The notes: generated by a model not told the origin, from the sequence alone. A DNA stretch of 64,000 nucleotides from Rebecca billardiae RCC1528 (GCA_965240325.2 OZ251225.1:2170001-2234000); one strand, 5' to 3'. Counted from the stretch's first letter, positions 2,943-56,957 are shown. A program made the numbers and translations.

Positions 2943-3887
2943 TCACGCCGGCTGGCTGCTGCCGCCGTCGCCTGCACGATCGCTGCCGACAGCCATGCTG
3001 GCAGCGCACCGGCGTAGACGCCGCACGTCCTTTGGCGGCCTCTCCACGGCCTCGTCGTCGCTGTCAAAACCCTCGGACCACTCCGTGTCCGAGCCAGTCG
3101 CGCTGCCGTCTGCCGGGGCTGGTGACTCGGCGGCAGCATCGGCCCCACCGGTGCCGGGCGCGGCCTGACTGCGCGCGGCGTGGCTGGCAGCGGCCGTGCC
3201 GCTCTCCTCAGACTCCCCGCTCCGCCCGCCCGCGGGCACGGCACCTCGCGCGTGCTGCGCATCGTCGCAGCCGGCCGCGACGGCAGCAGCAGCCTGGCGG
3301 CCAAGAGGCTCACCATCGGGAGGGGGAGGTGGCGCGTCAGCGCGCGCGTGCCGGGCGCGCGCCGGTCGGCCAACACCCTCCGCCGCCTCCGGCCGCTGCG
3401 GGTCTTCGTCGTCGCTGTCGAGCGCCCGCCGCTTCCGCTTGCGCATCGCGAGCTCGACCGTCAGCGTCACGCTCACGTCCGGCTCGCTGGACGCCTGCGC
3501 GGCCGAGCCGTCGGCGGGCGCGAGGTGGACAGAGATGAGGTCGCCTTGGCTCAGGTGCAGCAGGGCGCCTGCGCGTCGGCTGCGTCCGACGTGCTCGACG
3601 GTGTGATCGCGCGGGCCACGCGTGACGACGAGCGAGACCATGCCATCGACCCCACCTAGCGTAGCGCGTTCCGCCTCCAGGGCGAGAAGGTAGTGCCCGC
3701 TCTCGCTCACTACGTATTGGCCGAGTGATGGGTCGAGCTCGCGCGGCTGCGCGTCGGAGCAGCGCCAGTCGACGAGCCTGAGTGCGCCGATTTCGGCGAG
3801 GCGGGGATCGCCATCGAGGCCGAGCCTGGCCCGCTGGCTCCTCGCACGCATGTCTTGTGGCCGCCTCCGCCTCTCCAGGGCCGCCAT
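2943..3887 (-). CDS. Hypothetical protein, 314 aa; possible C1q/TNF-like beta-sandwich, then a basic NLS-like motif and acidic tail
   Basis: Single ATG-started ORF. VVSESGHYLL and GALLHLSQGDLISVHL resemble C1q/TNF strands, followed by MRKRKRR. Head-to-head with the PMI gene. Confidence 0.5.
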   Translation of the reverse strand: MAALERRRRPQDMRARSQRARLGLDGDPRLAEIGALRLVDWRCSDAQPRELDPSLGQYVVSESGHYLLALEAERATLGGVDGMVSLVVTRGPRDHTVEHVGRSRRAGALLHLSQGDLISVHLAPADGSAAQASSEPDVSVTLTVELAMRKRKRRALDSDDEDPQRPEAAEGVGRPARARHARADAPPPPPDGEPLGRQAAAAVAAGCDDAQHARGAVPAGGRSGESEESGTAAASHAARSQAAPGTGGADAAAESPAPADGSATGSDTEWSEGFDSDDEAVERPPKDVRRLRRCAASMAVGSDRAGDGGSSQPA

Positions 3888-4166
3888 GGCTCAACGGGGC
3901 TTTTCCGGCGGGCGTTCGCCCTGAGAATCCTGCCATTCCTCACGGCAACGGCAAAAAAACACGCCTGGCGCTGGCCTGGCCGCCCCGGCCGGCAGCAGCT
4001 CCAGCCGCCGCCTCCTACATTAATAAGAGCGGGTAGCTCCACGGGGTAATTCCACTAAGTCTACCTATTCTGGATCGAGCAAGCCGCCATTGTGCAGCGG
4101 GATCTCGTCCGCTTCCGAGCAACGCATCCAGCTCGCGAACGTGTTCGTTGACGTCGCCGTGTCACC

Positions 4167-6464
4167 ATGCCAGGCGGACCAGGTCTGCTCAGCGACCTCT
4201 TGCACCAACTCGATGTGCCCTCGGACGTGCGTCTCGTGAGCGTCTCCACCTCCATCGACCCGGTCGACGGCGCGACGGTGTGGACGGTGCAGTACAAGCA
4301 AACGTTGCCCGGCCAGCAGCAGTATCCGGCGGCGGCGCCCAGCCGACCAAAGGTCATCGCGCCCTCACATTCGATGCCCCAGTCTCCACGCGCCGGACCG
4401 ACGGCCCCGCTCTCGCCCTCGCACATGCCCCGCGACTTGAACATCGAGATCCCGCCCAGCATGAGCATCCAGAGCCTGGGCGGCGGGAGCGTCATGCGCG
4501 TGCCGCCGTCGCCGACGCCGGCTACGGCCATGCGCTGCTTCCCGCTCAAGTGCATCGTGCAGACGTACGCGTGGGGCAAGATCGGGCTCGATTCGGCCGT
4601 CGCGCGCCTCGCCGCCGAGGGCATCAACGACGACATCCCCATCGAGGAGTACACGCCGTACGCCGAGCTGTGGATGGGCACACACCCGGTTGGGCCGTCG
4701 CTCGTCGTGCTCGAGAACCCGTGGAAGTCGATCACGCCGCTGTCGGACTGGCTCAAGCTGAACCCGGTGATGGCCGGCTCGCAGGTGCGCGCGTCGCGCC
4801 GCCGCACCGTGCCTGCCGCACGCCGCGCCGCACGCCACGCGCACGCGTGCGGCCGCTCAGCGCGCGTGTGCCGCGCATGCTGCGGCCCCCATACCGTGCC
4901 GTGCGCAGGGCTTGCACGGACACATCCAGGTGCCGTTCCTGTTTAAGGTGCTGTCGGTCCGCACGGCGCTGTCCATCCAGGCGCACCCGGACAAGGCGCT
5001 CGCGCGCGAGCTCCACCACAAGCGCTCCGACCTGTACAAGGACGACAACCACAAGGCATGCGCGCGGCGCATCCGCTCTGCACGGCCGCGCATGCGCGTG
5101 CGCGAGCGTGCCCGCGCGCGCGCGCGCGCATGCTCGCCTGCCGGCGGCACCACACGCGGGGGCGTGCGCATGCCGACACCGGGTGCGCCTCTCCCACCGC
5201 GTGCGCCGCCGCCGCCGCCGCCTCCCTCCAGCCGGAGATGGCCATCGCCATCACGCCCTTCGAGGCGCTGTGTGGGTTCCAGCGCGCAACCTCGATCGTC
5301 GCAAATTGCATGGCGTGCCCGGAGCTCATCGAGCTCGTGGGTGAGGACAGGGTGAGCGCGCTGGACCAGGCGGCGACGTCGTCGGACGACATCAAGCCGG
5401 CGCTGCGTGACCTGTTCACCGTGCTCATGACCGCCCCCGCGCACATCGTCGAGACTAAGTTGACGAACCTGATGACCCGCATCGACGCGACCAACGAGAT
5501 GCTTCGGATGCCCGTGGACACGCTTGCGCAGCGGATCCACGCGCAGTACCCGGGCGACGTGGGCGTCTTCTGCGTGTACCTGCTCAACTACGTGTGCCTC
5601 AAGCCAGGTGCGCCGCGGCAGGCGCGCGCGCGCCCGCGGCGCGCCCGCCCGCGTGCGCACCGGCGTGGCGCTCACGCCGTGCTGTGCTGCGTCTGGCGCG
5701 CGCGCACTCGGCTGCGGCTTCGACCCGGCGCGCGCGCAGGCGAGGCCGTGTTCATGGCCGCCAACGAGCCACATGCCTACCTGTATGGGGACTGCGTCGA
5801 GTGCATGGCGTGCTCGGACAACGTCGTGCGCGCGGGGCTGACGCCAAAGTTTAAGGACACGGCGACGCTGTGCGACATGGTGCGCGCCGCGCGCCCACAG
5901 AGCCGAGGCCGGGCGCGCCACGAGGCAGCGCCGCCCGCCGTCGCGGGCAGGCGAGCGCGCACTCATTGCCCCCGACCGCCGGCCACGCTCGCCCGCGCGC
6001 GCTGCAGCTCACCTACAACGACGGCCCCATCGAGCTGTACCGCGGGCAGCCGATCGGCAAGTTCGTTAGCACATACATCCCGCCGCCGGCCGTGGATGAG
6101 TTCAGGCTGGAGCGCTGCCAGCTGCCGCCCAACTCCGCCTGCTCGTTGAAAGTGCGCGCGCGGCGCCCGCGGTGTTGCGCGCGGGTGCGCCTGCCCCGCC
6201 CGCCCTTGAGCCGACCGGTGGCTCACGTGTGCGCGCGCCCGTGCACGCGCCGCGTGCCCGCCTCCTCCGCGCGCGCAGGCGGTGGACGGCGTCAGCATCA
6301 TCGTCGTGATCAACGGCGCGGGCATCATCGAGGAGGTGTCAGGCCACAAGCACCCGATCAAGGTCGGCTCTGTGATGCTCGTGTGCGCCGGCTCGCAGCT
6401 CAACTTGAGAACACGCGAGACAGAGAGCTTGCTCGCGTTCCGCGCGATGGCACGAGACGTGTGA
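4167..6464 (+). CDS. MPI: Mannose-6-phosphate isomerase (type I PMI), 6 exons (4167-4784, 4909-5055, 5232-5607, 5740-5879, 6008-6151, 6279-6464), ~536 aa
   Basis: Motifs [44 protein letters not shown]|[42 protein letters not shown]. The exons splice in frame, and intron 2 is GC-AG. Confidence 0.95.
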
Positions 6465-47831: not shown

Positions 47832-48288
47832 ATGGATGAGTCCGACGTTGGCATCCGCGAATTCCTGCGGCCAGGCCCCGGCTTCACCGCGATCATCAAG
47901 CATCGCTTCGCGGACTTCATCGTGCGGGAGGTCCGGCTCGACCAGCGCGTGTGTCGGCTGCGCGTGCGCGCGAGCCGTGCCGCGGACACGCTCCCCTCGC
48001 CCGCTGGACCTGCTGGCGTAGAGCGCGACGCGACGGAGGATGCGGCCCGTGCGACGCTGGCAGACAGCCTCAGTGAAGCCGAACGCGCGGTGCTGGCCGA
48101 GCTCGCGCGCGCATCGGGCGCGGCTGACGCCAGTGCGCGCGCGGGCGAGGTCGTCCTAAGCGTGCACGACGACAAGGCGACGCGCACGGCGGTGCACAAG
48201 GCGATCCGCGCGCTCTACCCGGGCCTGTGCAGCGAGACGCGCGGAGAGGACAAGTCCATCGTCGTGCAGAGCGTGAAGGGTGGGCCAC

Positions 48289-48320
<32 letters not shown>

Positions 48321-49904
48321 AACAAGCGGCGGCGCGTCGACCCGTGGCCGGGCGGCGACCTTCACTTCCTCTCGTTCACGCTGCTCAAGGAGAACCGCGA
48401 CACGATGGACGCGCTGGAGACGCTGGCGAAGGCGCTGCACGTGAAGCCGAGCACCTTCTCGTACGCCGGCGTGAAGGACCGGCGCGCCGTCACCGCGCAG
48501 GAGGTGCGCGCCTACCGCCTCGACCCGAGCCGGCTGGGCGGTTTCCAGGACGCTTCCGCGGCGGGGCGCGACACGCTCTCAGTGGGGGACCTCGAGTTCG
48601 CTCGCGATGCGCTCAAGCTGGGCGACCTGGCGGGCAACCGGTTCACAATCGTGCTGCGCGACGTGGCAGTGCACGCGCTGCCCTGCGCGCTCGCCGGCGT
48701 GGCGGCCGTGCGCGCGCGCGGCTGCATCAACTACTACGGGCTGCAACGGTTTGGGAATAACGCGGCCGCGCCGACGCACCGCATCGGCGCCGCGCTGCTG
48801 ACGGGCCGGCTGCGCGACGCGATCGAGCTGATCCTCGCGCCGCGCGCGGGCGAGCGCGCCGACGTCGCCGCGGCGCGGCAGACCTACGCGCAGTCGCGCG
48901 ACGCCGCCAAGGCTCTCGCGCAGATGCCCAACTTCATGCACCGCGAGCGTAGCCTGCTGCAGGGTCTTGCGACGCCGCACGGCGCGCGCGACCTCGCGGC
49001 CACGCTCGCGCGCGTGCCGCGCAACGTCCGCAAGCTCTACCTGCACGGGTACCAGAGCTACGTGTGGAACTGCATGGCGTCCGAGCGCATCCGGCTATAC
49101 GGCGCGGACGCCCCCGTGCCGGGAGATCTCGTGCTGCTCGAGCGCGCCGCGCCGTCAGCTGCCGCCTCCGCGCCCGCGGCCGGCGACGGCGGCTCTGCCG
49201 AAGCGGCCGCGATCGGCGGCGCGGCGGCGGGCGAGGGCGAGCTGCTCTGCCCCGTGCGCGCGCTCAGCGCGGACGAGTGCGCCTCCGGCCGCTACTCGCT
49301 GCGCGACGTCGTCCTGCCGCTGCCCGGGACCGACGTGCGCTACCCCACCAACGAGCTCGGCCAAAAGTACCACGCGCTGATGCGCGCGGACGGGCTCGAC
49401 CCGGCCGACATGGAGCGGCGCGTGAAGGAGTACCAGCTGTCGGGCGCGTACCGCAAGCTGCTGCTGCAGCCGGAGGACGTGCAGCACGCCGTGCTCGCGT
49501 ACCCGGCGGACGAGCCGGACTGCCAGCTGACCGAGACCGAGCTGGACGAGTCGCGCGGGGTCGCGGTGGGCGGCACCGTTCTCACGCCGGAGGACCCTCG
49601 GCTCGCGCCGCCGCCGCCGGGCGAGGCGGACGAGGCGCGCGCGGCGGGGTGCGCCGCCGGCGCGGACAGCGCGAGCGACGCCCCAGCCGCGGCTGCGGCG
49701 TGCAAGTACGCGCTGCGAGTCGAGTTCACGCTGCCGCCCGGTGCGTACGCGACCATGGCGCTCCGCGAGCTGTGCAAGCAGTCGACCGAGGTGGATCGGC
49801 AGGCGCAGCTGTCCAAGGGGCAGGGCGAGCGCTCGCTCGGCACGACCAATGTGTCCGACGAAGCCGCCGCTGCCGCCCCGGCCGTGACGCAGGATTCGCA
49901 GTGA
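47832..49904 (+). CDS. PUS7: Pseudouridine synthase PUS7 (TruD family), intronless
   Basis: Motifs DVGIREF..GFTAIIKHRFADFIVREV, FTLLKENRDT, catalytic YAGVKDRRAVTAQ, LGDLAGNRFTIVLR, INYYGLQRFG, LYLHGYQSYVWN, GAYRKL and FTLPPGAYATMALREL. Confidence 0.95.
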
Positions 49905-50294
49905 CTTGCGGCGGCGCGTCCTGGGTCGGCTGACTGAGCGGAGGTAGGCTCAACGCCTCAAGGCTGACTCAAGCGGAAAAGTGGACAGCAGTTTTCATAT
50001 GAATGGTCATTCATCACTGCTGACGCTGTTGATCACAGCGGCCGCCCATGGATGCACAGTCGTCCCACAGCCGCAGTACATCGTCTGACCAAGGGCGGTA
50101 GTCTGACTGTGAGACTGTCCTCCTCGTCTTGATGACGTCTCAGACTCAGTCGGAAGCCGACTGATGATCGAGGCTTCGGCCGGTCGAAAGCGCGTCCGGG
50201 ACCAGCAGAGTCCGGGTTGAAAGCGGGCGCGCTCCTTGGCTTCGCGGCGCCGCCCGCGCCCAGCAGCGGAGGGACGACGACGGCCCGCGTCACC

Positions 50295-53200
50295 ATGCGA
50301 CCCGCGCTTTTCGTGATGGTGCTCGCGGGCGTCGCGGCCGCGAGCGCCGCTTCGAGCGGCACGGCGCCCAGCCCGCTGTACCCTGGTTTCGGATGCGGCT
50401 CGATCGTCGCCATGCAGGTCGCCGACGCGCAGTCGTGCGCGGACGCCGTGAGGCGCGTATCATCAAGCCGCGTCGCGTTCTCGTGGTCCGCGGCGACCAA
50501 GCTCTGCATGGGATGCTCGCCTTTCGACGTGCGCCAGCGCCAGCAGGACGTCGAGTACGACGTCTACTCCCTTGCCGATGACGGCGCAAGCGCGGATCCC
50601 GCCACCTCCGCCTTTGCCGCTCCCGCGGCAGCAGCTCCACGCCCACTTGCGCTCTCGACGTCGGCTCCGCAGCCGACGCTGCCCGCGGAGCGATCGCCGG
50701 CAGCGGTGGGCGCGGCGAGCGACGCTGCTACTGGGACGAGCAGCTCGGGTCCACCCCCGTCACCCGCGGCCCCCGCCGCTGCTCCCTCGTCGCGCTCGTA
50801 CATCGGCGCCGGCTGCGGCCATTTTGTGCGCGCCGCGGTCCCCTCGGCCGACGCGTGCGGCGACGCGGTGCGCGAGCGGGCGCACGGCGCGGACCCGCCG
50901 ATCACGCACTTTGCGTACAACGAGCGAGCACGCCTCTGCTTCGCGTGCACCGACGACGAGGTGTGGAAGCGCGTCGACGACGCGTCCACGTCCATCCACC
51001 CGGTCAGCAGCGGTGGCGAGCGGTCGCCCGCGCCAGCGCCGGCGGCGACTCCAGTGCTGCCGCGCGCGCCGAGCTCGCCCACGCCGGTCTCTCCAGCCCC
51101 AGCAGCCGCGCCAGTGGTGCCCTCGCGCGCGCCGAGCTCGCCCGTGCCGGTCTCGCCCACCTCGACACCCTCGCCATCTCTCCCCTCGCGCGCGCCGATC
51201 GTGCTCGCATCGCCCTCGCCGGCGCCTCGGCCAGCGCCGTCGCCCAGCCCGTCTCCGGCCGGCTCGGCCGCGCCCGCTCCCGGCTCCGAGGCTGTGCCTT
51301 GGGAGCACCTCGAGCCGACGCGGTCGGGGATGCGCTGCGGGAGCTTCGTCGCGTCGGGCATCGACTCCGCCGCCCGCTGCGCCTCGGCCGTCTCCTCGTC
51401 CGCCGGGCCGCACTACCCGTACATTGCGTGGTCTGATATGAGCCTCTTCTGCTACAAGTGTACCGAGGCGGAGGTCGAGTCTGCCGGCCGCGCGCTCATC
51501 GAGCCGGCGTTCGACATCTACCCGGTCGCCTCGCTGCTGCCGGTGGTGCACTTCTTCTCGCCGCAGCCGCCGCCCGCGGCGCCGACGGCGAGCCCACCGC
51601 GCTCGCCATTGGCAGCACCGCCCTCACCCTTGCCCTCGCCTTCGCCCTCGCCATCGCCACGGCCCCCGCCGCCCTCGCCCGCGCCATCGCCGACTGCGTC
51701 GGCCGGTAGCGTGGCCGTGGCCGCTGCGCACGCCGGCTGCGGCGACCTCGTGGCGCAGGGCGTGACCAGCGCGGCCGCGTGCTCGCGCCTCGTCGCCGAC
51801 GCCCCGTACTTCACGTGGGGCGCGGGCAGCGGCTTCTGCTTCAGCTGCTCCGCGCCTCAGTTTGAGCAGCGCGTCGAGATGGGCAGCTATGACGTGTACG
51901 GCGGCGCCGGCGGCGCGACGGCCGTGCCCGCGCCCGCGGCGCCGCCGCCTGGGCCCCGCGCGCGCCTCGCGCCGCCCCCGGCGCCGAGGCACGCCGCCGG
52001 GCCCGCCGTCCTCGCGCGCCTCGTGTACCCACGCCAGGGCTGCGGCACGTTTGTGGGCGCGGGCGTTCCGTCGGCCGACGCTTGCGCGAGCGCCGTCGGT
52101 GCCGCCATCGAGCACGTCGCCTACTCCGTCGATCGGGGGCTGTGCTTCGGGTGCGACGAGGGCGAGCTGGCTGCGCGCCAGCCGGCGCCGGATGCATCCA
52201 TCTTCGCCGTCGTTCGCACCGGCGCCGCTGCCGCGGCACCGCCGAGCGTCGTGCCCGCCGCGTCGCCGAGCCCATCACAGCCCGCACCCAGTCCGCCGCC
52301 GCTGCCGGCCTCGCCGCCGCTGCCGCCACTCAGCCTGGTCGCGTTTGCCACGAGCTTCTGCGGCTCGCGGCGGTGGCCCACGTCGACGGACACCGAGTCC
52401 GCCGCGGCGTGCGCCGAGGCCGTCGCCGCCGGCGCCAAGCCCGGCCAGCCTGCGCCCGCGCACTTTGCGTGGGCCGAATCGCCCGGCTACTGCTACGCGT
52501 GCTCGGCACGCGAGGTCGGCGCGCGCGTCGGCGACGCCCAGTACGCGATCTACCACACGCGCGCGTTCGTGGGCGCGGCCGTCGCGGTGGAGCAGCCGGC
52601 TGGCGGCTCCGCCGGCCCGCACTCCGCCGGCGGCACGAGTGCCGCCGGCGGCGGCGGCTCGGCGGGCGGCGGCGCGGCGGCGGCGCTCGGCTTCCATCTC
52701 GACCGCCGAGGTTCAACCTGCGTCGAGAACGCCGCCGTGTACGACGACGTCGAGTCGGCCGCCGAGTGCGCGGCGCGGACCGGCGGCTTCGCGCGCTTCG
52801 CGTACTCGCCTGTGTTCCACATCTGCACCGCGTGCACGGAGCGCGGCTACGCGCTGCGCACCCAGCTGGCGAATTACGACATTTACGCGCGCGGCGCGGC
52901 TCCGAGCGCGGCGCCGGCGCCGGTGCCGCCCTCGCCCTCGCCGGCGGCGTCGCCCAGCCCTCAGCCGCACCGCGCGGCGGAGCCTGTGTACGCCGCCGAG
53001 GCAGGCTGTGGCGACCTGCGCGCGACGACCGGCGGCGAGCCGCCCACCGTCGCGGCGTGCCGCCGCGTCGCGTCGGCTGCGGGGACGCGCTTCTTCGCCG
53101 CGCCAGACGATCCGACCGCGCCCGGCGGCAGCTGCTACATATGCTCCGACGCGCAGGCGCGCGCGCGGCTACCGTACAGCGGCTACGGCGTGTACGAAAC

Positions 53201-56200
53201 AGACCCGTCGGCCGCGCCGCACGGCGGCGGCGGCGGCGGCGCGCGCCCGACCGTGCCGGCGTGGATGAGGCCCTACCCGCCGCCGAGCCCGGGCCCGCCG
53301 CCCACGCCGCCGCCCGCGCTGCCGCCGCCGCCGTCGCCCGCGCCGCCCCCTGTGCTCGTGGGCACAGACGACGGGAGTGGCATGGTCTATCGCCGCTCGG
53401 GCTGCGGGTCGATCGTGATGCACAACGTCTACTCCGCCGCCAAGTGCGCCGAGCTGGTCAACCGGTATCGGCCCCAGCCCTACTTCACGTGGGGCGAGAG
53501 CACGGCTTTCTGCTTCAGCTGCGACCCGAAGCAGCTGGGGCGGCGCGAGCGCAACCGTGTGTATGCGATCTACAGCATGGAGGCTTTTGGCGGCGTGCGC
53601 CTTGTGCCGCCGTCGCCGCTGCCGCCGAGCCCGAGCCCGCCGAGCCCGCGCCCGCCGCCGCCGTCGCCGTCGCCGCCGCCGTCGCCGCGCCCGCCGCCGC
53701 GCGCGGCGCTCCGCCCCGGCACGATCCCCACGCGCCGCCCTTCCACCCCGTCGGGCGCGGGTCCGCAGCCCGTCGCGCGCGGCTCGGGCTGCGGCAGCAT
53801 CGTTCGCGCGAGCGTGGGCAGCGTCGCGGAGTGCACTGTGCTCGTGGCCGCGGAGGCGCGCACGCGGTACGCCTCGTTCTCGCCCAAGTCGGGCGGCTGC
53901 TTCAGCTGCTCCGAGGAGGAGTACGGCTACCGCATGCCGATGGAGGGCTACGACATTTATTTTGCGGCGCTGCCGCCGGGGGGCGGCCGGCCGAGCGCCG
54001 GGCCCGGCCCGGGCGCCGCCGACGCGCACGGCCCGGCGCCGTCGTCGCCGGCGCCGGCGGCGGTGGCCGGCGGCGGTGGCAGCGGCGGCATCACGGGCGC
54101 CGCTGGCAGCGGCGGCGGCGGTGGCAGCGAGGGCGGCAGCAGTGGGGGCGGCACCACCCCCCGCCCGCTCCCTCGGCCTCCGAGCGCGCCGACGCGCCCG
54201 AGCGAGGCTCCGGCTTCGGCCCCCGCCCCGGCGCCGAGCGCTCCTGCCGCGCACGCGCGCGCGCCCGCGCGGAGGCGGGTGGGCGTGAGCTGGCTCGCCG
54301 TGAGCGCGCTGCTCGTGCCCGCCCTCCTCCTCGGCGCCACCACCGTCTCAGCGCCCGTCCTGCCGCCGCCCGCGGCGGACGGCGCCTCGCAGCCCGCCGG
54401 CGGCGAGATGCTATCTCCCGCGCCGGCGCGCTCTCGGCACCGGGACGCCCTTTGGATCCTGGGCTCGGTCGCGGGCGCGGCGCTCGCGTGGCTCGCGCTC
54501 GGGTACTCGCTGGCCTTCAACCCCCGCTCGGTGCCCGGCGGCCTCGTCGGCTCACCACAGCTCGTCGAGCCCACGGCGGTGGGCGCGTCGGCGGGCGGGC
54601 TGGATTCGAGCTGGGTGTGTGTAAGCCTCGAGCTTGTGCGCGCGCTCGCGGCCGCGCTCGCGCTGGCCATCTGCGCGCCGCTGCGCCTGCTGTGGCAGCA
54701 CGGCGCCGCCGCGACCGTCGGCATCGGCGTGTGGGTCCTCTGCGCCTACGCGCCCATCGCGCACTGGGCGTGGAGCGAACACGGCGCGCTGCGGCAGCGC
54801 GGCGTCCAGGACGTCGGCGGCGCATCCGTTCTCTACATCAGCGCCGCGTGCGCGATGCTCGTGATTGCGCGCGCCCGGCTCTCCTTCCTCGAGCGGCTGC
54901 GCGAGGAGCCGCTGGGCACGGAGGAGTGGGAGATTGGCGCGCAGTGCGTCGGCAAGCGCTGGGCCCGCCTCCCGCCACATGCGGTCGTCGGTCCGCGCAC
55001 GCGCGCGCGCGCTCGTGCGCAGAGCCCGCCGAGGGCTCGGCGCGGCGCGGGCGCGCGATGCGTGCCGCGTGCGCGGCGCGAGCGCGGCGCGCGCGCTGCC
55101 GGCGGGCTGGGCACGCGGTGTCCGCCGCTCGCCCCGCCTTCACCGCCTGCACCCCCGACCCCTCCGAACTGCCGCGTCGCGCCCCGCGCCGCGCGCAGCG
55201 CTCTTCGTGGCCGGAGTCATCGGCCTGCAGGCCGCGTCGGCGCAGCGCGCGGGCGGCGACCCGACGCAGGCGTTGTTCGCGACGGCGCTGTCGGTGCGCG
55301 CGCGCGCGCCGCGCCGCGCGCCCCCGGCTTCTGCGTACGCACGCCGATCGCACACCCCGGCCGCGCGCCGCGCGCGGCCCACGACTCACCGCCGCCCGCC
55401 GCCGCCGCCGGCCCGCCGCCGCCGCCGCCGCCGCCGGCGTGGACGCACCCTCGCGCGCAGGCCGTGTGCGGCGCGGTGGTCTGGATGGTCTTGGCCGAGC
55501 TTCGCGCGCGCCGGCGCAACCTGTCCAAGGCGCCCCTGCGCAGCTCCGTCTCCTTCGCCATGCTCGGCGCGGCGAGCGTCGAGTCGACCGTTCGCTCGCT
55601 CGAGCGCGTGCGCGCGCACGAGCTCGCGGACGCGGTGGTCGGTGCCGTGATCGGTATGGCCTGCGCTACGCCCGCGGCTGGTGTGCAGTCGGTGGTGCCT
55701 GTTGGCTTCCAAGCGCTCGCCGGCGCCGCCGTCGCGTTCGCCGTCGCCTCGCCGCTCGACCGCTTCTTCGTCGTCCAGCTCGATGGGCCCGACTACGCCT
55801 CCACGACCCTCGTGAGCGCGCTCGACGCGCCTTCGCACACGCTGATGCTCGCCGGCGGCTTCGGCGCTCCGACTGCGCTCACGCTGGCCGCGCTCACGGC
55901 GACGCCCGCTTCGGAGGCCGCGGCAGGGCGCGGCCTGCCGGAGCGCCTCGCGGCTCAGCTCCTCCTCGCCCTCGTCGCCGGCCTCTGGTCCGCGTGCGTG
56001 ACGAAGGTGCTGCTCCTCCTCGGCCGTTCCTTCGCGCGCGAGATCACGATCCTGCCCATGCCCGACGGCGGCGCGCAGCGGCAGCGCTCCAACTCGCCGC
56101 CGCAGCCGCCGCGGTCTGAGGCCGAGGTCGCGGCGCACGGCTCCTGCATGCGCAGCGCCGACGCCTCGACGCAGCCCACGGGCCCGCCGCACTCCGCGTC

Positions 56201-56957
56201 GAGCCAGCCGGCGGCCCTGCGCTCCGCGCACCGGACGCCCGCGCACACACCCATCAAGAGCAGCGCTCTCAGCGCGGCCCCGCGGCCGAGCCCGTCGCCG
56301 CGCATCGACCTGGCCTCCTCGGACCTCTCCTCGTGCACGCCCGTGCGCCGCCACGCCGAGGCGGCGGGCCGCTCCGACGCGCTGCCCCTCCCGTCGAGCG
56401 CGCGCCCGGTGCGCGCCGTCGACATCCCCGTCGTGCTGCCCGACGGCGCGAAGGTGATGATGACGATTCGGCAGGGCGACGAGATCGCGCAGCTCGTGCG
56501 AGCCTTCTGCGCCCGCCACCAGCTGGCGGAAGACTGTGAGCCTCACATTCAGAACTACCTACTGCAGCGGTACACGGCGGCGGGCGCGGCGGAGCCCGGC
56601 TCCGCGCTCAAGCGCGCGGCCTCGCCGCTCACCCCCGAGCCGTCGCTCCGCCGCCCAGCCGGTGCAGAGCCGGGCGGCACGCGCACGTTGACTGCATCCG
56701 ACCAGCTGCCCACGCCAAGCCCGCACCATCGCGCCCCGGAGAGCAGCACGCAGCTCGCCGCCGGCGCGCGCGTCACTCACTTCTCGTCGTCCCCTGCCGC
56801 TCTCGACAGCGCCGACTCGGGCGCTGATGGCGGGGCTCGACCGGCGACGGGTCAGACGCACGCGACCCGCGAGTACGCTCATCGCTCCCGCGCAGCGGCA
56901 GCGGCGAACGCTTCGAGTGCCGGGCCTGCGGTCGCCAACGGCAATGGGAATGCGTGA
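50295..56957 (+). CDS. Signal peptide + 10 Cys4 PAN/apple-like modules + degenerate ammonium-transporter (Amt) domain + cytosolic tail; exons 50295-54951, 55199-55293, 55461-56957; ~2082 aa
   Basis: Signal MRPALFVMVLAGVAAASA. Amt-like motifs in the correct order: WLAVSALLV, WLALGYSLAF, YAPIAHWAW..GAL...GVQDVGG, LFVAGVIGLQAAS, ALFATALSAVCGAVVW, GAVIGMACATPAAG. One GC-AG and one GT-AG intron give 6249 nt in frame. Confidence 0.85.
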   Translation: MRPALFVMVLAGVAAASAASSGTAPSPLYPGFGCGSIVAMQVADAQSCADAVRRVSSSRVAFSWSAATKLCMGCSPFDVRQRQQDVEYDVYSLADDGASADPATSAFAAPAAAAPRPLALSTSAPQPTLPAERSPAAVGAASDAATGTSSSGPPPSPAAPAAAPSSRSYIGAGCGHFVRAAVPSADACGDAVRERAHGADPPITHFAYNERARLCFACTDDEVWKRVDDASTSIHPVSSGGERSPAPAPAATPVLPRAPSSPTPVSPAPAAAPVVPSRAPSSPVPVSPTSTPSPSLPSRAPIVLASPSPAPRPAPSPSPSPAGSAAPAPGSEAVPWEHLEPTRSGMRCGSFVASGIDSAARCASAVSSSAGPHYPYIAWSDMSLFCYKCTEAEVESAGRALIEPAFDIYPVASLLPVVHFFSPQPPPAAPTASPPRSPLAAPPSPLPSPSPSPSPRPPPPSPAPSPTASAGSVAVAAAHAGCGDLVAQGVTSAAACSRLVADAPYFTWGAGSGFCFSCSAPQFEQRVEMGSYDVYGGAGGATAVPAPAAPPPGPRARLAPPPAPRHAAGPAVLARLVYPRQGCGTFVGAGVPSADACASAVGAAIEHVAYSVDRGLCFGCDEGELAARQPAPDASIFAVVRTGAAAAAPPSVVPAASPSPSQPAPSPPPLPASPPLPPLSLVAFATSFCGSRRWPTSTDTESAAACAEAVAAGAKPGQPAPAHFAWAESPGYCYACSAREVGARVGDAQYAIYHTRAFVGAAVAVEQPAGGSAGPHSAGGTSAAGGGGSAGGGAAAALGFHLDRRGSTCVENAAVYDDVESAAECAARTGGFARFAYSPVFHICTACTERGYALRTQLANYDIYARGAAPSAAPAPVPPSPSPAASPSPQPHRAAEPVYAAEAGCGDLRATTGGEPPTVAACRRVASAAGTRFFAAPDDPTAPGGSCYICSDAQARARLPYSGYGVYETDPSAAPHGGGGGGARPTVPAWMRPYPPPSPGPPPTPPPALPPPPSPAPPPVLVGTDDGSGMVYRRSGCGSIVMHNVYSAAKCAELVNRYRPQPYFTWGESTAFCFSCDPKQLGRRERNRVYAIYSMEAFGGVRLVPPSPLPPSPSPPSPRPPPPSPSPPPSPRPPPRAALRPGTIPTRRPSTPSGAGPQPVARGSGCGSIVRASVGSVAECTVLVAAEARTRYASFSPKSGGCFSCSEEEYGYRMPMEGYDIYFAALPPGGGRPSAGPGPGAADAHGPAPSSPAPAAVAGGGGSGGITGAAGSGGGGGSEGGSSGGGTTPRPLPRPPSAPTRPSEAPASAPAPAPSAPAAHARAPARRRVGVSWLAVSALLVPALLLGATTVSAPVLPPPAADGASQPAGGEMLSPAPARSRHRDALWILGSVAGAALAWLALGYSLAFNPRSVPGGLVGSPQLVEPTAVGASAGGLDSSWVCVSLELVRALAAALALAICAPLRLLWQHGAAATVGIGVWVLCAYAPIAHWAWSEHGALRQRGVQDVGGASVLYISAACAMLVIARARLSFLERLREEPLGTEEWEIGAQCVGKRWARLPPHAVVGPRTRARARAQSPPRARRGAGARCVPRARRERGARAAGGLGTRCPPLAPPSPPAPPTPPNCRVAPRAARSALRGRSHRPAGRVGAARGRRPDAGVVRDGAVGARARAAPRAPGFCVRTPIAHPGRAPRAAHDSPPPAAAAGPPPPPPPPAWTHPRAQAVCGAVVWMVLAELRARRRNLSKAPLRSSVSFAMLGAASVESTVRSLERVRAHELADAVVGAVIGMACATPAAGVQSVVPVGFQALAGAAVAFAVASPLDRFFVVQLDGPDYASTTLVSALDAPSHTLMLAGGFGAPTALTLAALTATPASEAAAGRGLPERLAAQLLLALVAGLWSACVTKVLLLLGRSFAREITILPMPDGGAQRQRSNSPPQPPRSEAEVAAHGSCMRSADASTQPTGPPHSASSQPAALRSAHRTPAHTPIKSSALSAAPRPSPSPRIDLASSDLSSCTPVRRHAEAAGRSDALPLPSSARPVRAVDIPVVLPDGAKVMMTIRQGDEIAQLVRAFCARHQLAEDCEPHIQNYLLQRYTAAGAAEPGSALKRAASPLTPEPSLRRPAGAEPGGTRTLTASDQLPTPSPHHRAPESSTQLAAGARVTHFSSSPAALDSADSGADGGARPATGQTHATREYAHRSRAAAAANASSAGPAVANGNGNA

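Follow-up and report, generated by a model that had tools for sequence, protein, structure and literature searches.

The window analyzed, a stretch of 64,000 nucleotides from Rebecca billardiae RCC1528, contains on its plus strand an open reading frame running from 50217 to 56957, with its first ATG at 50295. In our model, the gene is made up of three exons (50295-54990, 55199-55293, and 55461-56957) and its predicted product is a membrane glycoprotein of 2095 aa. The features are listed below; modules 2 to 10 were delimited by their Cys pattern and by alignment, and slashes mark splice junctions.

50295 to 50357, plus strand: predicted signal peptide, MRPALFVMVLAGVAAASAASS, opening with the frame's first ATG as start codon
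50373 to 50582, plus strand: module 1, PAN/apple-like with four Cys (alignment, AF2 model, Foldseek)
50793 to 51014, plus strand: module 2
51315 to 51545, plus strand: module 3, with 66% identity to one of the modules that precede the CCMP2436 homologue
51717 to 51914, plus strand: module 4
52020 to 52220, plus strand: module 5
52338 to 52577, plus strand: module 6, the start of which, FCGSRRWPTSTDTES, has a match in L001 (Pavlovales sp. CCMP2436) at 3726-3896
52698 to 52901, plus strand: module 7, the end of which has a match in L001 at 5309-5467
52986 to 53213, plus strand: module 8
53382 to 53597, plus strand: module 9
53769 to 53981, plus strand: module 10
53982 to 54284, plus strand: linker rich in Gly, Pro, Ala, and Ser that connects module 10 with TM1 (83% P/S/A/T/G), ending in ARRRVG
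54285 to 54990, plus strand: Amt-like domain, TM1-TM5 and first residues of TM6, up to the end of exon 1 (Pfam PF00909, Mep2 match, hydropathy)
54991 to 55198, plus strand: intron 1, G/GTCCGC ... GCGCAG/C, phase 1, with a (CG)n run inside
55199 to 55293, plus strand: exon 2, 95 nt, coding for the larger part of TM6 and the beginning of TM7
55294 to 55460, plus strand: intron 2, TCG/GTGCGC ... GCGCAG/GCC, phase 0, with (CCG)16 inside
55461 to 56024, plus strand: Amt-like domain, TM7-TM11, strongly diverged (custom HMM, hhalign), with the ATPAAG motif kept
56025 to 56954, plus strand: tail of about 310 aa, predicted to be cytosolic, with coding-type GC3 (0.89) and dN/dS of about 0.3-0.4 against L003
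56409 to 56573, plus strand: conserved 55-aa tail domain, VRAVDIPVVLPDGAKVMMTIRQGDEIAQLVRAFCARHQLAEDCEPHIQNYLLQRY

The exon/intron model agreed with the GC3 signatures, and both exon junctions aligned without gaps to L003, an intron-less contig of a close relative that is truncated at its 5' end and so does not reach the point at which modules and Amt-like domain join. GC was flat over the codon positions in intron 1, and the junction at intron 2 (...ATALS/AVCGAVVW) agreed with the spliced forms in L003 and in another relative, P0004. Exon 2 lies in a frame different from that of the long open frame; its GC1/2/3 values in its own frame were 0.74/0.58/0.97, and its equivalent was also present in P0004, P0082, P0083, and L003. 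An alternative donor is possible for intron 1, at 55015, and would add 8 residues that are absent from L003. The dN/dS ratio of the gene against L003 was 0.31-0.41, with purifying selection on the core of 11 membrane segments. An earlier note on this DNA had proposed one spliced frame of about 2082 aa; its single gene model stood, but with two introns, the TM6 exon in another frame, and a product of 2095 aa. All four parts that it had described (signal peptide, ten Cys-rich modules on Pro/Ser/Ala stalks, Amt helices, and tail) were found in the gene.

By eye, the n/h/c pattern of a signal peptide is recognizable in MRPALFVMVLAGVAAASAASS: the n-region is basic, some 13 hydrophobic residues form the core, and the last residues are small. 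This peptide would direct about 1300 residues to the secretory lumen or the cell exterior. Residues 1-1205 contain exactly 40 cysteines, arranged as ten units C-x13-16-C-x18-26-C-x2-C, each of which terminates in Y-D/A-I/V-Y, and two disulfides are predicted per module. Seven of the nine inter-module linkers consist of 69-82% Pro/Ser/Ala/Thr. Because identity to module 1 is merely 21-33% and repeats at the DNA level are confined to the low-complexity linkers, the modules are, as judged from these alignments, old and not recent duplicates.

The AF2 model of module 1 had a pLDDT of 96 and a pTM of 0.84. The top PDB matches found for it with Foldseek were all PAN/apple proteins, namely the SML-2 lectin, MIC4, the HGF N domain, and AMA1. 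TM scores against PAN/apple structures of the PDB and AFDB were 0.6-0.78 (about 0.7 for the top matches) with a probability of about 1.0, and the AFDB clusters that were matched are named Apple or PAN. The best PDB match of the module profile was to the apple domains of MIC4 (E = 0.015), and no match to the Pfam PAN models was found at E up to 1, in the whole protein or in other module-bearing proteins. As modeled, the modules have the PAN/apple fold, in which an antiparallel sheet wraps around a single helix and disulfides hold the structure together, and they reveal a PAN-like four-Cys module family missed by Pfam. PAN/apple is a binding fold. With PAN/apple adhesins and lectins such as Toxoplasma MIC4, Sarcocystis SML-2, AMA1, and the HGF N domain, the modules share the fold (TM about 0.7), the tandem arrangement, and a predicted outward orientation. 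They differ from the usual apple pattern by their four Cys, including the C-x2-C pair, and their anchor would be a multi-pass, transporter-derived core, whereas those proteins have a single helix or GPI.

A search with the Pfam Ammonium_transp HMM (PF00909), which had been put forward in the earlier note as a check, gave 30.8 bits for a cut-off of 23.2, the match being limited to profile positions 42-168 of 399; P0004 scored 40.2 bits over positions 38-252. With a custom HMM made from 18 canonical Amts, the spliced product scored 77 bits (positions 53-263), with a weak second stretch at 246-383. The TM1-TM5 part matched Mep2 in a PDB sequence search, and all 100 of its 100 matches by ESM features were Amt clusters, at 0.89 (under the lead threshold of 0.9). 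The C-terminal half gave no Amt match by single-sequence PDB search or by ESM features; profile-profile comparison (hhalign) aligned it with TM8-TM11 of Amts in the expected register (E = 4e-4), at a probability of just 35%. An AF2 model of the Amt-like domain of P0004, based on a family-only alignment, had a pLDDT of 51 and a pTM of 0.34 and yielded no meaningful Foldseek match and no Amt. Hydropathy indicated 11 segments, collinear with the Amt HMM. We conclude from these sequence profiles that the membrane domain is descended from Amt/Mep ammonium transporters.

An N-out, C-in topology is favored because the predicted inside loops contain 22 Lys + Arg, as compared to 10 for the outside loops. 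Four arginines are found directly before TM1, on the predicted outer side, which counts against this orientation. The protein resembles Amt/Mep/Rh proteins (E. coli AmtB, fungal Mep2) in its 11 segments, its predicted N-out/C-in topology, its homology above the Pfam threshold, and its GYSLAF, PIAHWAW, xD(V)GG, and TPAAG motifs. Unlike them, it has a signal peptide and 1300 predicted extracellular residues before TM1, a C-terminal half that is barely recognizable, and a tail of about 310 aa with a conserved domain of its own, and other residues have taken the place of the twin-His pair and of the two gate phenylalanines.

Inspection of the hmmalign columns indicated that five pore positions (AmtB numbering) are replaced: F103 by V, F107 by A, H168 by Y, W212 by V, and F215 by L. 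The Phe gate (F107 and F215) is thus lost. As to the twin-His pair, no relative has a His at position 168 and no His aligned with H318. The His of the family motif VLDAPxH is 4 residues out of register with H318 and is Tyr or Arg in 2 of 8 members. In TM3, a conserved Arg occupies the Q104 position. Residues equivalent to W148, D160, and S219 have been retained here and in all relatives covering those positions (4, 3, and 5 rows, respectively, the P0004 row being misaligned at D160), and since they are kept, an ammonium-binding site could persist. The state of the pore residues was consistent over the relatives.

The 55-aa tail domain is 31-82% identical in nine relatives. It had solely sub-threshold matches, to the ubiquitin-like folds Raf RBD, FERM F1, and Rad60-SLD. 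Its PDB profile matches were all Raf RBDs, but with E values of 0.3-1.5, and its ESM features led to unnamed clusters. Assignment as a Raf RBD was not supported, with scores of 16-22 bits for a cut-off of 25.7 and coverage of the first half of the model alone. Pfam and NCBIfam scans of the protein disclosed no HK, HAMP, or GGDEF domain.

About eight relatives, 38-66% identical, were found in Pavlovales sp. CCMP2436 and in environmental assemblies; the only named one is annotated merely as a 575-aa hypothetical protein beginning at TM1. Comparison with them supports a genuine architecture that other Pavlovales-like organisms have also conserved. We found no description of PAN modules followed by an Amt core in open-access papers or among public annotations, in line with what the earlier note had surmised.

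The gene most likely encodes one large membrane protein with ten extracellular PAN/apple domains and an Amt-like core. The most likely function that we infer for it is that of a non-transporting surface receptor or adhesin built on an Amt-derived scaffold, and, as an overall explanation, a 2095-aa PAN-array protein with an Amt-derived core that acts as a non-conducting surface receptor or adhesin is the one towards which we lean, with some reserve. Canonical ammonium conduction would have been lost, and the Amt-derived core, probably a trimer-forming scaffold, would serve as the membrane anchor; the PAN modules would bind a carbohydrate or protein ligand and the tail domain would recruit a cytosolic partner. 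The earlier proposal of an Amt scaffold repurposed as a receptor is partly supported: it agrees with the architecture, the PAN binding fold, and the loss of the twin-His pair and Phe gate, which are needed for canonical transport; the receptor role itself is putative. A bolder version, possible but doubtful, is that pavlovophyte haptophytes have an unrecognized class of surface receptors, in which a transport-dead trimeric Amt scaffold carries three long PAN/apple arms and signals the binding of a ligand, or of a ligand plus ammonium at W148/S219, to the conserved cytosolic domain.

We also considered that two distinct proteins, a secreted one with PAN repeats and one that is Amt-like, encoded by adjacent genes or brought together by an assembly join, might be linked here solely by the rarity of stops at 75-79% GC. 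Spurious long frames do exist elsewhere here (e.g., 1345 aa at 52082-56119), GC3 in the linker does not single out any frame, and the annotated CCMP2436 model begins at TM1. This explanation is nonetheless very improbable: the stretch that leads from module 10 to TM1 lacks an in-frame ATG, the nearest Met being residues 1214 and 1216, in module 10, and 1372, past TM1; two independent contigs, P0001 and P0082, each comprise module, linker, and TM1-TM5 within one open frame; and L001 contains at least 6 module pieces upstream of the Amt-like gene and on the same strand, with no other gene called in between. An assembly chimera at the junction, against which the earlier note had warned, is unlikely because of this continuity and of the upstream modules in CCMP2436. 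A decaying pseudogene, with Amt residues lost through disuse, would account for the loss of catalytic residues and the high divergence of the C-terminal half, but is extremely improbable in view of a frame that is open over exons totaling 6.3 kb, in which GC3 is of the coding type, a dN/dS of 0.3-0.4, and substitutions and motifs common to the relatives. Because relatives at 38-66% identity share the same substitutions, the losses appear to be old and the changed state to have been kept.

It is improbable that the protein still works as a transporter or channel, moving ammonium or some other small solute through a remodeled pore, with the ectodomain added for regulation or anchoring. Both gate Phe and the first pore His are lost, no His aligns with the second, and an Arg stands at the Q104 position in TM3, although the 11-segment core is under purifying selection and family motifs (LVRAL in TM3, VLDAPxH before TM10) are conserved in the membrane segments. 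Nearly all known active Amt/Mep/Rh proteins have the twin-His pair; the known exception is fungal Mep1/3, in which Glu takes the first position. An ammonium sensor or transceptor appears unlikely. In this case, NH4+ would bind to the external site (W148, S219, and the structural D160), the pore would be blocked, and the tail domain would be signaled, with the PAN array providing a second input or positioning the protein. The conservation of W148, D160, and S219 in each relative covering them and of a domain in the tail fits with this, and Amt scaffolds are already known as ammonium receptors in Ks-Amt5 and Sd-Amt1 (PMC11152129). However, in these receptors the Phe gate and the His pair are intact and guide NH4+ to internal sites, whereas F107, F215, and H168 are replaced here; F107, an Ala in this protein, belongs to the external binding site itself; and no HK, HAMP, or GGDEF transducer is present.

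The favored reading, a surface receptor or adhesin on an Amt-derived core, invites comparison with the bacterial Amt-like receptors Ks-Amt5 and Sd-Amt1 (PDB 8qj3), which keep every pore motif, sense NH4+ at internal N1/N2 sites, and carry a C-terminal HK or HAMP-diguanylate cyclase (PMC11152129). They share with the present protein an Amt scaffold fused to another functional module and, as predicted for the latter, used for a purpose other than net uptake; here, the added module is N-terminal and predicted to be extracellular. The known type of Amt fusion to a histidine kinase or diguanylate cyclase was ruled out because its members keep an intact pore (PMC11152129), while the pore motifs are lost here, and HK, HAMP, and GGDEF are lacking. 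Amt/Mep/Rh proteins have been studied as channels and, in a few bacterial cases with an intact pore, as ammonium sensors. Yeast Snf3/Rgt2 and Ssy1 are transporter-like nutrient sensors that no longer transport and offer a functional analogy, in that a transporter fold with a long cytosolic tail would serve as a membrane signaling scaffold; unlike the protein described here, these MFS and APC members are not known to carry any large ectodomain built of modules, and they still have the ancestral substrate as ligand. If our reading is correct, this would be a eukaryotic case, conserved between species, in which the fold is kept, the pore residues are lost, and a big adhesion-type ectodomain is displayed outside. 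It would provide a natural test of the roles of the Amt scaffold besides transport, such as trimerization and conformational coupling, and a candidate recognition system (for other cells, prey, symbionts, or viruses) in haptophytes, the surface receptors of which are almost unknown.

In P0001 and P0004, a Met is found directly before TM1, and because of this the Amt core may be expressed separately in these two relatives.

We examined the candidate gene for coding signal in the window, which consists of eukaryotic-looking DNA with a GC content of 60–79%; the GC reported for Diacronema lutheri is 73% (PMC8379373). One uninterrupted frame spans 50217–56957 on the + strand, with its earliest ATG at 50295. 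The gene and its neighbor are as follows:

50295–56957, + strand: candidate gene, encoding a predicted signal peptide, ten Cys-rich modules, an Amt-like membrane domain, and a predicted cytosolic tail
47832–49901, + strand: upstream neighbor, a TruD/Pus7-type pseudouridine synthase gene (Pfam TruD 245 bits, PUS7L_N 34 bits), apparently a single exon; the public gene collection has no entry with an identical product

Because long open frames are cheap at such GC, openness of the frame is by itself no evidence for a gene. What does count as evidence is codon-position composition: in the frame of the earlier note, GC3 was 0.85–0.93 and GC2 0.56–0.70 over the modules, the tail, and the membrane domain in each of its halves, while the flanking DNA was flat at all three codon positions. 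An Arg/Ala-rich frame of 1345 aa in another register (52082–56119, + strand) overlaps the gene, and both strands hold many others; such frames arise from the 75–79% GC and are not genes.

Residues 1–21 of the protein look, on reading by eye, like a signal peptide. The ten Cys-rich modules on Pro/Ser/Ala stalks described in the earlier note were borne out: residues 1–1205 contain exactly 40 Cys, all inside ten units of the pattern C-x13-16-C-x18-26-C-x2-C followed by a Y-D-I-Y-like strand, and Pro/Ser/Ala/Thr make up 69–82% of seven of the nine inter-module linkers. The array is old, since the other units are 21–33% identical to module 1 and tandem repeats at the DNA level are confined to the low-complexity linkers. 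No N-x-S/T sequon was found in the ectodomain of about 1330 residues (50295–54284), so that any glycosylation there would need to be of the O-linked type, on the Pro/Ser stalks. Module 1 was modeled with AlphaFold from an alignment of the ten modules, giving a pLDDT of 96 and a pTM of 0.84. The leading Foldseek matches of this model were without exception PAN/apple domains, the PDB entries being the Sarcocystis lectin SML-2, Toxoplasma MIC4, the HGF N domain, and AMA1 (TM about 0.7); AlphaFold DB clusters labeled Apple or PAN concurred. A module profile compared with PDB sequences also placed the MIC4 apple domains at the top (E = 0.015). The Pfam PAN models did not detect the modules in this protein.

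The module also occurs in further pavlovophyte proteins, D. lutheri KAG8463553.1 and Pavlovales sp. CCMP2436 KAJ1617926.1 among them. Proteins of 130–560 aa from pavlovophytes and marine samples that have the four-Cys PAN-like unit are P0009–P0011, P0013, P0015, P0023, P0037, P0038, and P0079, none of which shows an Amt domain. Pfam scans of module-bearing proteins, which covered KAG8463553.1 and six members of this list, gave no significant match. The unit is a module family without a name.

The membrane domain scored 30.8 bits with Pfam Ammonium_transp, above the gathering score of 23.2, over profile positions 42–168 only, and its closest solved structure by sequence was Mep2 (E = 8e-4). With ESM features, for which scores below 0.9 serve as a lead only, all 100 of the 100 neighbors of the N-terminal half were Amt clusters (top score 0.89). 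The C-terminal half was recognized neither by single-sequence search nor by ESM features. Profile-profile comparison of the family relatives with 14 canonical Amts placed it on Amt TM8–TM11 in the expected order (E 4e-4, with a probability of only 35%); these Amts had been picked by N-terminal similarity to the query alone, so that their C-terminal halves are unbiased. An exhaustive HMMER search yielded about eight true relatives, and generic Amt patterns retrieved from metagenome contigs only canonical Amts (mostly bacterial, about 30% identity) and no family member. Hydropathy indicated 11 segments, and a positive-inside count of 22 versus 10 is consistent with the predicted N-out, C-in orientation. 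The TM1 proposed in the earlier note (VSWLAVSALLVPALLLG) lies outside the HMM alignment and resembles, by eye, the canonical TM1 consensus. An AF2 model of the Amt-like domain, computed for the relative P0004 from a family-only alignment from which canonical Amts were deliberately excluded to avoid forcing the fold, reached a pLDDT of 51, and its Foldseek matches were noise. The putative Amt fold rests on sequence profiles.

The single in-frame splice assumed in the earlier note had to be abandoned, as the TM6 exon sits in a different frame. The TM5–TM7 interval of the long frame reads as Arg/Ala/Pro junk. There, a different frame yields a TM6-like peptide over 95 nt (own-frame GC1/2/3 of 0.74/0.58/0.97). 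Two homologs, P0082 and P0083, read the same TM6 exon and then run on into GTGCG-type donors; P0004, the annotated CCMP2436 protein, has the TM6 join in spliced form. L003, an intron-less 1722-nt contig from JGI sample 3300016936 whose 3' end is lower in GC, and which we infer to be a transcript, encodes a 60%-identical relative with an uninterrupted TM5–TM6 loop, TM6, and TM7. Gap-free alignment to it was obtained solely with introns at 54991–55198 and 55294–55460, removal of which gives a product of 2095 aa. A donor at 55015 in the initial splice model was dropped because only 54991 aligned without gaps.

Indirect evidence argues strongly for one fused gene. No in-frame ATG occurs from module 10 to past TM1, so TM1 can be translated solely within the long protein. 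A module, a linker, and TM1–TM5 lie in a single open frame both in P0001 (ENA metagenome contig) and in P0082 (Logan contig), and the frame of P0082 is open across a Pro/Ser stalk as far as the contig end. The CCMP2436 homolog is preceded by at least six same-strand module pieces with no other called gene between, and some of these are nearest to specific window modules (66% identity for module 3, versus 30–36% to others). For the sole named relative, the annotation gives a hypothetical protein of 575 aa beginning at TM1, as separate genes would have it; taken together, we consider two genes very improbable. A dN/dS of 0.31–0.41 against L003 indicates that the gene is maintained, and a pseudogene is hardly credible.

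Pore states were taken from the columns of an hmmalign alignment with canonical Amts. Two MAFFT alignments were set aside because short exon fragments in them were misplaced.

Pore residues of the protein (E. coli AmtB numbering)
F103: Val
Q104: Arg, conserved family-wide
F107: Ala
W148: retained
D160: retained
H168: Tyr; His in no relative
W212: Val
F215: Leu
N216: Gln
S219: retained

No His aligned at the H318 position; a family His in the motif VLDAPxH is four residues off that register and is not universal. With these replacements, a remodeled transporter seems quite improbable. The main rival is an ammonium sensor working through the retained W148/S219/D160 site. However, Ks-Amt5 and Sd-Amt1, which are ammonium receptors based on Amt, retain all tabulated pore motifs (PMC11152129), whereas several are replaced here, so that the protein is not of their type, and we regard such a sensor as unlikely. 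The anatomy of the gene is established; as to its function, which we infer, we lean somewhat toward a non-transporting surface receptor or adhesin, in which the PAN arms would bind a ligand, the Amt-derived core would anchor the protein and probably trimerize it, and the tail would engage a cytosolic partner. Each part is of a known kind, be it the PAN domains, the Amt fold, or receptors derived from transporters; what is new is how they are combined, together with the loss of the pore. No open-access paper was found with both an ammonium transporter and an apple domain, and a wider literature query returned nothing relevant.

The tail, put at about 300 aa in the earlier note, measures about 310 aa and is for the most part of low complexity. 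It includes a 55-aa domain conserved in nine relatives (31–82% identity), whose matches (Raf RBD, FERM F1, and Rad60-SLD) were all sub-threshold and consistently ubiquitin-like folds; ESM features gave mostly small-protein clusters without names.

Several features of the relatives deserve mention. In the CCMP2436 locus (L001, MU631790.1, 1–12948), the model KAJ1620506.1 begins at TM1; the module pieces upstream of it, at least six in number, carry no annotation and lie in a region broken by assembly gaps (N runs). In this model a 30-aa stretch rich in His and Pro is inserted between the equivalents of W148 and D160 and resembles a retained intron, and the C-terminal end is unrelated to the family tail. 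Positions 1–22 of the environmental contig L002 translate as DVYKRQ / EMCIRDS, which is typical of leftover Nextera adapter; this contig end is thus an artifact, and the N-terminus of P0001 is truncated. L002 and another, independent environmental contig, L084, carry a 312-aa mitochondrial-carrier gene (L002 3650–4588, L084 3603–4541) directly downstream of the family member. Scans of two ORFs directly downstream of the window gene revealed no such domain, and both contigs may therefore be orthologous to a paralog instead. Finally, four Arg (ARAPARRRVG, 54264–54284) immediately precede TM1 on the predicted outside face, without conservation in relatives; they could form a basic processing site freeing the ectodomain, or reflect mere local composition.
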